The notes beneath the pieces were generated by a model. That model did not search any database. It was not told the origin of the DNA and worked only from the letters and a program-made list of their open reading frames with translations. DNA of 64,000 bases. It comes from Setoptus koraiensis. Taxonomy: Eukaryota > Animalia > Arthropoda. How positions within the stretch are numbered: position 1 is the first letter of the stretch; every line of letters begins with the position of its first letter. This document shows positions 61,639 to 64,000 of the stretch, one piece after another. The stretch covers positions 18,972,001 through 19,036,000 of the forward strand of contig CM106586.1 of the NCBI GenBank assembly GCA_048013815.1, written 5' to 3'. Position numbers and translations under genes: made by a program.

Positions 61639-64000
61639 CTACTTTTTAGCAACTTTATTACTTGAAACAAGAGCGTGTTGCCTCATCCAGCGGTATTTTC
61701 TATTCTTGGGCTTGTCAGGTATGGATAAACCCTCTAAATTTACATCATCCATGTTTGAAAATGTGTTCGAGTTTGTATCTGTTGAGATGCTGCTATCATT
61801 GGCTGAAATCAGCTTTGACATCTGTCTTTTGAGTTGCTTAATTTCAGAATCTTTAGACTCCATTTCCATCTTGAGGCGAGAGGTTGTCTGACATTCCTCA
61901 TACAGAGACGCTTGCATCTCTGAAACATTCTTTTGTAACCGTGCGACAGTTTGATCAAAGCGTTCCCGCTCGGTGGTGAGATTTTGTTGCATTTTCCTAC
62001 ATTCCTTTTCTTTTTTACGCAGCTCAGAAGTATTGTCTTTGCTAGATTTTTTAGAGCTCATATTCATATCTTTTCTGTACATTATCTCTGCAAGCTTGTT
62101 AACAGCTTGCATCTTGAGAAGGCGCTCTTGATGAAGCTGCTTCTGCAAGGTCTCAATCTTTTCTGTTAGACTTTCTTTGTCCTGATTCATCGTTAATTTC
62201 AGATTATCTATTTCCGTAAGAAGATGCATTTCCTTATCGTTCAACAGCTGTATCAAGGTCTGCAAAGAACAATGTTCTGTCTTGAATTTATTTTCAATCT
62301 CCTTGATCTCTAATTCCCTTATTGCTCTTTCCTTCTCAAGTCTAGCGACATTACTTTCAGACGACTTGCGGGCAGCTATTTCCTCGCTGGATTTCGCTAT
62401 GGATAAATCTAGATTATGACTTAGCTGATTTCTCTGTTCTTGTAGATCTTGTATAATTTTTTGACGCTCCTCTAGTTCTTCCTTAAGTTCCTTCACTTGA
62501 TTCTTGTACAATGATGCAAAATGTTGCTCTGTCTCCAATTCTAACTGATCAGTAGATTTTATTTCAGCCAGCTTGTTTACTGCTTGGCCTTTGAGCAAAC
62601 GTTCCTGGTGGAGCTGTTTCTGAAGGATTTCAATACGCTCGGCTAGACTTGCTTGATTGCTAGATTCTTGTATAAGAGTATTAAGGCGTGATTGCATATC
62701 ATCTTTTTCTTTAACGTGTATCTCTATTTGCTTTGTGAGCTCGAGTTCACGTTCGCGAAGTTGAGTTATTGTGGAATCTCTAGAATCAATTTCAGATTTG
62801 AGACTTTTTTCAGTTCCTAATATTTCCAATTCCCGGATTGCCTTACTTTTTTCTAGAACAGCCAGTGATTCTTCGGCTTTCTTCCTTGCAGCACAGTCTA
62901 ATTTAGATTGAGCTATAGTAGAGTCTAATGTTTGACAAAGTGAATTGCGTTTCTCTTCTAGTTCGCATACTAATTTCTTTTTGTCTTCAAGTTCCTGTTT
63001 GAGTTCATCAAGTTGATTTTTGATTAGGCTGGCATCATGAGTAATGTCATTAGCATGACCATCGGTATGATTATTTTTATATTCTATATTATTGTGATTA
63101 TGATGATTAGTTGATAGTGGGTTTTTAATAAGTTTATCACAAGATAAAAGTTGATTATCAGAGGAATAAGTGAAACCAACAAATGGTAGATGGTTGCCAG
63201 CAAAAGCTTTTGGCACAGGAAAGCTACTCTCCTCAAGATTGTCATCGCTTTCTTTTTCATCAAAATCAAAATTGCTGGTATCATCATCGCTTTTGAGTTT
63301 TGGTTGCACTGGTGGGACACAATCTCTAATAGTATCGAATGTCCAATCATTGTTTATAAAGAATGGGTGCCTTTTAATTTCATCGACACCGTGGCGGCCT
63401 AGCCGTTTTGGTGCATCAGTGAGGAATGAACAAATAATATGTTTGGCTTCTGGAGAGATCTCAACGGCATCATCGAACTGTAGAGAGTTTTTGTGATCCA
63501 TAATTTTTCCGTATAGGCCAATAAGTGTAGGATCACTAAAGGGTGGATCACCAAAGAGCATTTCATATAGGAACACTCCCACTGACCACCAATCACATTC
63601 TAAGCCGTATGCTTTCTTTTTATCAATTTCACTACTCTGCGATTCTAACACTTCTGGACTAATATAATCTGGCGTTCCAACGGCAGTATGACACCACACT
63701 AGCTTGTTGCTGTCCATTCGCATACAAGTGCCAAAATCGGCCAATTTGACGTGTCCATTTTTATCCAAAAGCATATTGTCTGGTTTAACATCGCGATGCA
63801 CAAAACCCATCTGATGTATGGAATCGACAGCTAACACAATTTCTGCACAATAGAATTGGGCCCATTTTTCTGGTATATCAAAATTGCTAATTAAATTGAC
63901 AAGGTCACCCCCTGGCATATAATCCATAACCATATACAAGTAGCGTTCGTCTTGGAAAGCGAAATGCAATTTAACAATCCAATCTGTGGTGGCGTGTGCC
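61639..64000 (-). CDS. ROCK: Rho-associated protein kinase, 5' part beyond the window; atypical C-terminal half
   Basis: The frame is open to the window edge. Kinase motifs: [42 protein letters not shown]; hydrophobic motif LPFVGFTY. Two copies of the Rho-binding signature [15 protein letters not shown] are present, and the ORF stops just inside the PH domain. Confidence 0.95.

Follow-up and report, generated by a model that had tools for sequence, protein, structure and literature searches.

Predicted truncation of ROCK within its PH domain and duplication of its Shroom-/Rho-binding module in eriophyoid mites

Introduction

Does the ROCK gene of an eriophyoid mite end where its membrane-binding domain begins, and if so, what would place the kinase at the cell cortex? 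The question is raised by a stretch of 64,000 nucleotides from Setoptus koraiensis (GenBank assembly GCA_048013815.1, contig CM106586.1, positions 18,972,001 to 19,036,000 of the forward strand), here called the window, at one edge of which lies a ROCK gene. ROCK, which is also a drug target, has a central role in the control of actomyosin contraction and has been studied intensively. Models at present hold that its PH-C1 module is essential for recruitment to the membrane or to zones of Rho activity, and that its coiled coil is a spacer of conserved length throughout the animals (PMC4686654, PMC13646499). S. koraiensis (Phytoptidae) is an eriophyoid mite with a chromosome-level genome of two chromosomes (PMC11920263). 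Eriophyoids are about 200 um long, with genomes of 30-50 Mb (PMC7738191).

The reading that we favour, with a probability of roughly 0.8, is that the gene is the sole eriophyoid ROCK orthologue, that it has lost PH-C1 and about 400 residues of coiled coil, that its Shroom-/Rho-binding module has been duplicated, and that the protein is placed at the cortex by Rho, Shroom and basic tails.

Results

A short ROCK in a single exon

The ROCK gene is a single intronless open reading frame (ORF) of 916 aa on the minus strand (L001:140-2890, which equals window 61639-64389). The start ATG is at window-equivalent position 64389, past the window end, and codons 1-130 lie outside the window. The parts that identify the protein are:

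61639..64000, minus strand: portion of the single-exon ROCK ORF that falls within the window (residues 131-916 and stop), from the ORF reading, Pfam and identity to a spider-like ROCK
63358..63999, minus strand: in-window part of the kinase domain (residues 131-344), with HRDVKPDN and DFG intact (Pkinase match 80-344, E 2e-60)
63166..63183, minus strand: AGC hydrophobic motif FVGFTY (residues 403-408), invariant in 29 relatives

The Pfam scan of the ORF returned a complete Pkinase domain, Pkinase_C (the AGC C-terminal extension) and two Rho_Binding domains (PF08912), both above the cut-off, and neither a PH nor a C1 domain. The Rho_Binding matches, at residues 551-610 and approximately 720-774, are 169 residues apart, in agreement with an earlier note on the window that had described a duplicate of about 170 residues. 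The N-terminal 413 residues (5-417) are 72% identical to the spider-like ROCK P0025. The best database matches of the protein are all ROCKs, the best named relative being that of the wheat curl mite Aceria tosichella. The N-terminal dimerisation segment, the kinase and the hydrophobic motif of a DMPK-type AGC kinase are all present, whereas the split PH domain with its embedded C1 and the coiled coil of about 730 residues (107 nm) are not. We conclude that, as judged by sequence and orthology, the mite protein is a ROCK, though without two features usually counted as defining.

Two other identities were considered and rejected. Affiliation with MRCK/Gek is contradicted by the lack of C1, PH_MRCK, CNH or CRIB in or near the ORF, where Rho_Binding is found instead, and DMPK is ruled out by the two Rho_Binding matches and by ROCK-specific motifs. 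As a separate observation, the two chromosomes yielded no locus of the MRCK/Gek type (a DMPK-type kinase accompanied by C1, PH_MRCK and CNH), in a search where PF25346 (PH_MRCK) returned nothing for the controls either. Two CNH matches adjoin kinase matches whose identity to ROCK is only about 30%. MRCK itself, or else its C-terminal domains, may also have been lost in the mite.

A single gene under purifying selection

No second ROCK-type kinase was found in the two chromosomes, and Rho_Binding matches occur there only in this gene; the genome search proposed in the earlier note thus returned no full-length ROCK. The next-best kinase match is 39% identical and belongs to a MAST kinase. A ROCK- or MRCK-like paralogue was rejected, the next matches being to MAST and to another kinase, whose kinase domain is split and which has neither C1 nor CNH nearby.

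For comparison with a close relative we used contig L004, a Logan assembly of another sequencing run (SRR33593474), which represents a different but close organism with approximately 91% identical DNA and a synonymous divergence (dS) of 0.27. The ratio of non-synonymous to synonymous substitution rates (omega) for ROCK was 0.036 for the whole gene and 0.014 for the kinase half. With a single copy under such strong purifying selection, the gene is a derived, working orthologue, and neither a paralogue nor a pseudogene. The alternatives offered previously were a rewired paralogue or a derived orthologue, of which the second stands.

The short form is shared by a clade

A protein search identified 34 relatives of 736-916 aa that have kinase and Rho_Binding domains but lack PH, C1 and PH_MRCK. 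They include the 916-aa protein encoded by contig L004 (P0001) and a UniRef entry from A. tosichella. Every other arthropod ROCK in the list of this search is 1200-1440 aa long and has PH/C1 domains; the ROCKs of spider mite, chigger, spider, horseshoe crab and sea spider are full length. Short ROCK proteins are already in public databases, under the ordinary name, and no mention of a mite ROCK without PH-C1 was found in a literature search.

A quick maximum-likelihood tree was computed from the N-terminal 430 residues. In it, all short ROCKs fell into one clade, with a value of 100 in the Shimodaira-Hasegawa-like approximate likelihood ratio test (SH-aLRT), and this clade was sister to the arthropod ROCKs. 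This genome and L004 were sister to the other 33 short ROCKs (support 99). This position implies that the loss of PH-C1 predates the split of this lineage from the other 33. The loss is thus an old one: it characterises a clade of 35 sequences and is no local accident, and the feature is not the peculiarity of one locus as which it had been treated.

The ORF ends in a remnant of the PH domain

The C-terminal end of the ORF comprises:

61738..61800, minus strand: hypervariable linker (residues 864-884), predicted disordered (AlphaFold2 confidence score pLDDT <50), with a majority-residue fraction of 0.21 in the clade
61642..61737, minus strand: PH remnant (residues 885-916), strands beta1-beta2 minus Trp, with a final AKK (colinear alignment and profile match)
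61687..61713, minus strand: core basic motif KPKNRKYRW (residues 893-901), KPKNRRQRW in relatives (clade alignment)

At the start of the PH domain, 78 full-length ROCKs, nearly all from arthropods, read RLEGWLSVPNKQNIRRHGWKKQYVVVSSKKIIFYNSE; the mite tail is thus recognizable as PH strands beta1-beta2 from which the Trp of EGWLS has been deleted. The C-terminus of the spider-like ROCK (P0025:1050-1370) aligned colinearly to the mite ORF until three codons before the stop, with 40% identity and an E-value of 9e-18. Both comparisons bear out the view that the ORF ends in a decayed first PH strand pair without that Trp.

The rest of the module was searched for with a profile (A1) built from 22 ROCK PH-C1 modules (245 positions) and run on stop-to-stop translations of all six frames. 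In the 64-kb window, the profile matched only the last 28 residues of the ORF, at profile positions 2-30. Since the search was otherwise blank, there is no PH or C1 exon between the ROCK stop and TADA2B, as had been noted from the ORFs. The best other match, a candidate relic PH exon at 59977-59825 (minus strand, downstream of the casein kinase II beta gene), scored 6 bits at profile positions 31-63, which follow immediately on those retained in the ORF. It was rejected as coding sequence on account of gaps in the L004 alignment that are not multiples of three, in microsatellite-rich DNA.

When the same P0025 segment was compared with the two chromosomes, only the ROCK tail and one weak C1 match were recovered. 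The weak match (C2:22406167) was dismissed as an orphan PH-C1 gene, as it falls within an ORF of 273 aa that encodes a ubiquitin-like domain of PKD type together with a C1. A search for orphan PH-C1 exons, also suggested in the earlier note, was made at all 31 C1_1 matches of the two chromosomes; against the PH-C1 profile these matched only in the C1 columns or not at all. The C1 loci identified are PKC, PKD, the PKD-like ORF and myosin IX (four by Pfam scan), with Vav as the fifth. Nor was any PH-C1 found downstream of ROCK in four relatives, over 10 kb in L002, 6.8 kb in L003 (the same relative as L002), 6.8 kb in L037, 1.9 kb in L004 and 0.7 kb in L005. Genome-wide profile searches with PF25346 and A1 were empty for the controls too, and are hence uninformative.

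We note in passing that the 273-aa ORF (L006:1718-2539, corresponding to C2:22405717-22406538, plus strand) combines a PKD1-type ubiquitin-like N-terminal domain with one C1, has no in-frame kinase, and is arranged tail to tail with the gene of a PKN-like kinase.

The stop codon and the 3' end of the gene

The sequence around the end of ROCK contains the following features:

61654-61659, minus strand: AATAAA within N-K codons of ROCK, read from the sequence
61633..61641, minus strand: three in-frame stops, TAG TAA TAA, identical in the independent assembly L004
61632..61637, minus strand: further AATAAA overlapping the second and third stops, likely a poly(A) signal (putative function), read from the sequence
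60870..61535, plus strand: casein kinase II beta (CK2 beta) gene, converging on ROCK, the stops of the two being 104 nt apart (PF01214, E 2.7e-76)

An error of sequencing or assembly (an indel or a base error at 61640-61740) is one conceivable explanation for the stop. The published assembly was built from PacBio continuous long reads (CLR), which are prone to indels; it was, however, polished with Illumina reads at approximately 194x coverage. Moreover, the independent short-read assembly L004 shares the frame, the tail and the three stops, and from 61740 down to the stop it differs from the window at one position, which is synonymous. No downstream frame codes for PH-C1, and all 34 relatives end at the same place. 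The chance of an error is therefore practically negligible, and the sequencing fault that had been named as a possible objection did not materialize.

A second explanation is that an intron starts near the apparent stop (e.g. CAA|GTAATA, 61658-61663) and splices to distant PH-C1 exons, with CK2 beta as a nested gene. GT dinucleotides do occur in the last ROCK codons, the ORFs of the relatives end at slightly different points after the Arg-Trp (RW) codons, which could resemble read-through into an intron, and the published annotation was made without RNA-seq. Against this, no PH-C1 was detected in any frame of the window, at the chromosomal C1 matches or 0.7-10 kb downstream in the four relatives, and poly(A) signals follow the ROCK stop in four lineages: in addition to the one described here, AATAAA or ATTAAA lies at most 25 nt past the stop in three further, more distant lineages. 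In L037, the sole GT between the RW codons and the stop sits inside the conserved Arg-Trp codons themselves. More than 80% of eriophyoid genes are intronless, and intron loss has been 3'-biased (PMC7738191), which also speaks against a spliced 3' end; in this genome, long genes are uninterrupted ORFs. We consider such an intron very improbable.

CK2 beta occupies 60870..61535, which leaves no room for further ROCK exons here. In L004, ROCK and CK2 beta are convergent as in the window, and the omega of CK2 beta between the two is 0.006. We conclude that the ROCK stop is real and that the predicted gene terminates about 30 residues into the PH domain.

How the truncation arose may be approached through exon borders. 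The PH-start exon of Tetranychus and Leptotrombidium extends to ...ALILDL, which is 22 codons past the position of the mite stop. Truncation by read-through at this old exon border was rejected, the border lying 22 codons beyond the stop. A stop or a deletion inside the PH-start exon, followed by loss of the downstream exons, would fit better.

A shortened coiled coil with a duplicated module

The distance from FVGFTY (403-408) to the LEG at residue 885 is 477 residues, the length given in the earlier note, as compared with approximately 724-729 in full-length arthropod ROCKs. AlphaFold2 was run on ROCK residues 400-916 with the clade alignment, and pLDDT values <50 were read as disorder. The following segments were predicted:

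63034..63165, minus strand: low-complexity linker (residues 409-452, 44 residues), predicted disordered (pLDDT <50; alignment)
62566..63033, minus strand: helix 1 (residues 453-608), Shroom-/Rho-binding module copy 1, with QAVNKLAEI at its end (AlphaFold2; Rho_Binding 551-610)
62062..62535, minus strand: helix 2 (residues 619-776), Shroom-/Rho-binding module copy 2 (AlphaFold2; second Rho_Binding match; motifs)
61801..62031, minus strand: helix 3 (residues 787-863), conserved final coiled-coil stretch (AlphaFold2)

In the prediction, residues 400-452 are disordered, the helices are broken at 609-618 and 777-786, residues 864-896 are again disordered and 897-916 form a low-confidence end. The 44-residue linker replaces about 400 residues of N-terminal coiled coil that are present in other ROCKs. 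Helix 3 shows approximately 90% column conservation in the clade and no amino-acid changes relative to L004. The three predicted helices comprise 391 residues and would span about 57 nm at 1.46 A per residue, the value used for the human ROCK2 rod of 730 residues and 107 nm (PMC4686654).

Both copies of the module end in QAVNKLAEI and are present in all clade members of the alignment. The motif of the putative Shroom-binding segment upstream of Rho_Binding (YxSLYKxQ type), by which alone this segment was judged, is invariant in the clade, and a gene with a Shroom ASD2 domain is present in the genome. The duplication is common to the whole clade and therefore as old as the truncation. The front of copy 1 has again been trimmed in many lineages, and the distance from the hydrophobic motif to the tail varies between 332 and 496 aa within the clade, which argues against selection for a set rod length. 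Elsewhere, rod length among ROCK orthologues has a spread of +/-3.5 nm (about 24 residues), and shorter rods are mentioned only for nematodes and flatworms (PMC4686654). The proposal that the duplication partly restored the length cannot be demonstrated from a duplication of this age with a copy 1 that has been trimmed anew. It is at least as plausible that the added Rho- and Shroom-binding sites compensate for the lost recruitment by PH-C1.

Conservation of the basic tail

The motif K-P-K-N-R-R/K-Q/Y-R-W is 96-100% conserved in 23 of the 29 aligned clade members, across the deep split of the clade, whereas the 40 columns that precede it are 21% conserved. The median net charge in the clade is +5 for the last 18 residues and 0 for the preceding 30; the 18 residues after LEGWL in full-length ROCKs likewise carry a net charge of +5. 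In most short ROCKs, ...KP-x-DKPKNRRQRWLR is followed by 0-12 further residues up to the end of the protein. Beyond RW, each lineage shows its own pattern of decay, and in most of the other lineages the end has moved back to just after RWLR, with traces such as RVY...PGH. In two or three lineages (P0003/P0011 and P0006) the motif has been lost, and the proteins have unrelated ends with a net charge of +6 and aromatic residues.

The last 32 ROCK codons have no non-synonymous difference and one synonymous difference relative to L004, with about 5 expected from the gene-wide dS of 0.27. The synonymous sites of 61642-61737 are thus nearly frozen, an observation in its own right; the constraint here may be at the RNA or DNA level, e.g. 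through 3'-end signals that the two convergent genes have in common.

A functionless, decaying relic, with the protein positioned by Rho and Shroom alone, is one way to view the tail. Lineages without a basic end exist (3 of 29: P0017, P0026 and P0036), and the residues after RW are indeed eroding lineage by lineage. Yet the motif itself is kept at 96-100% in 23 sequences, next to 40 columns at 21%, and no amino acid has changed in 32 tail codons between species at a dS of 0.27. A mere relic is accordingly quite unlikely.

Regarding the kind of function, the ROCK PH-C1 module reportedly has no phosphoinositide or diacylglycerol signatures and binds membrane through a cluster of positive charge; it is reported to be recruited to zones of Rho activity and to act jointly with the domain that binds Rho (PMC13646499). 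The conserved basic tail of the mite points to some possible remaining electrostatic membrane contact. This qualifies the suggestion that the kinase is recruited by protein partners rather than lipids, which is not supported as stated, the surviving part of the PH domain being a conserved basic hairpin of net charge approximately +5.

The basic residues could instead serve as a signal for nuclear localisation, as a peptide on which a protein partner docks or in the intramolecular regulation of the kinase, with PH-C1 lost and no contact with the membrane. RRQR and KPKNRR fit the loose pattern of a classical basic nuclear localisation signal, and the strict conservation of K-P-K-N-R-R-Q-R-W is more typical of a specific contact between a peptide and a protein than of plain electrostatics. 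On the other hand, the lineages that have lost the motif carry equally basic and aromatic ends of unrelated sequence, suggesting that charge and aromaticity outweigh the exact sequence, and the domain from which the motif is derived is one for which membrane binding through positive charge has been reported (PMC13646499). The two kinds of evidence pull in different directions: a specific contact is favoured because the exact sequence of the tail has been kept, and a role for charge is favoured because the lineages without the motif have convergent basic replacements. We regard a tail with such a role in place of membrane contact as rather unlikely.

A further step would be that, in these mites, which are the smallest of the arthropods, the membrane anchor was cut from a folded PH-C1 module of about 250 residues to a linear basic beta1-beta2 motif of 9-12 residues, which together with the doubled module would be enough for cortical placement of a half-length ROCK. 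This we offer tentatively, as a possible but somewhat doubtful extension.

Neighbourhood of ROCK in the window and in relatives

The intergenic DNA between CK2 beta and TADA2B is poorly conserved and rich in microsatellites. It contains a block of about 45 nt (GAGCACAACAAATATTGGGCGAACGTCAATGAGCCAG...) that is identical to L004 and is situated at approximately 59880-59927 (minus strand as aligned). A scan of 58200-61700 with Rfam gave nothing near any gathering score. The G+C content of the window is 47-59% in positions 1-36000 and 36-42% in 36001-64000.

The neighbour of ROCK differs in two eriophyid-like contigs, where a conserved same-strand ORF of 787-797 aa (L002:13458-15851 and L037:5821-8184) follows 0.7-0.9 kb after ROCK, unlike the CK2 beta of this genome. 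This ORF has no firm Pfam domains and no PH-C1 match. L002 and L003 (JGI 3300027033, ENA ERZ761561) are long eriophyoid-like contigs, of up to 92 kb and with a coverage of approximately 630 in one, that reside within public 'metagenome' assemblies.

Discussion

In the reading that we favour, membrane-anchored Rho-GTP would place the kinase at the cortex through two Rho-binding sites per chain, that is four per dimer, and Shroom would add to this placement. The two basic tails of the dimer would provide a weak electrostatic contact with the membrane, keeping part of the contact of the lost domain, and a PH-C1 anchor would have no part in the placement. The kinase heads would be at most about 60 nm from the membrane, as compared with 107 nm, and thus much closer than in other animals.

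Several points weigh against this reading. The published annotation having been made without RNA-seq, the support for the end of ROCK is genomic sequence. The two chromosome contigs that were searched do not include the roughly 5.8% of the published assembly that is on unplaced scaffolds, 563 in number. The tree is a quick version, based on the N-terminal 430 residues and midpoint rooted. For most of the relatives, the protein is an ORF called on a genomic contig, and such a call would end at an intron in any case. The A. tosichella entry presumably stems from a transcript assembly; what can be cited is that such an assembly exists. The tail is dispensable at least in the three lineages without it, and its conservation would be explained equally by a role in nuclear localisation or in peptide docking.

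Canonical ROCK, Drosophila Rok and C. elegans LET-502 have in common with the mite protein the dimerisation segment, the kinase with FVGFTY, the conserved end of the coiled coil, and the Rho-binding (QAVNKLAEI) and, as a putative segment in the mite, the Shroom-binding (YxSLYKxQ) part of a parallel coiled coil. In contrast to them, the mite ROCK has no split PH/C1, approximately 391 instead of 730 helical residues, the module twice, and a 30-residue PH remnant at its end.

A shortened ROCK is also produced by caspase-3, and the cleaved ROCK1 (residues 1-1113) is reportedly the classical constitutively active form. It resembles the mite protein in that it ends almost at the PH start and retains the kinase, the coiled coil and the Rho-binding domain without PH-C1. 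However, it is a proteolysis product of dying cells, whereas the mite form is encoded in the germ line, fixed in a clade and under purifying selection, with a shorter rod and a basic tail. DMPK, the smallest member of the family, consists of a kinase, a short coiled coil and a short tail that decides membrane association, and has no PH, C1 or CNH. Segments that bind Rho or Shroom are absent from it, and its tail did not originate from a PH domain; the mite ROCK has only converged on the simpler DMPK layout.

With regard to the rod, a ROCK2 mutant with a deletion of 60 nm was folded and active in vitro, and rod deletions of at least 5 nm abolished stress fibres in mouse fibroblasts (Truebestein et al. 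2015, PMC4686654). The predicted mite rod, which is about 50 nm below the 107 nm, resembles this 60-nm deletion mutant. It differs in that a living mite lineage has no other rod than this short one, and in that the distance from hydrophobic motif to tail varies within the clade.

The mite ROCK is thus a natural mutant, with no PH-C1, about half of the rod, a sole gene and strong purifying selection, and would represent a natural exception to the need of ROCK for an anchor and a spacer of fixed length. If the tentative reading of a reduced anchor were true, neither PH-C1 nor a fixed 107-nm spacer would be required in an animal, and the ruler could be rescaled or dropped. The questions that this opens are whether the length of the ruler is tuned to the size of the cortex, whether doubled Rho sites can replace PH-C1, and whether the reduction of a folded lipid-binding domain to a short linear motif is possible. 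For the eriophyoids, in which genome streamlining has been described, the short ROCK provides a further, concrete example of a lost domain.

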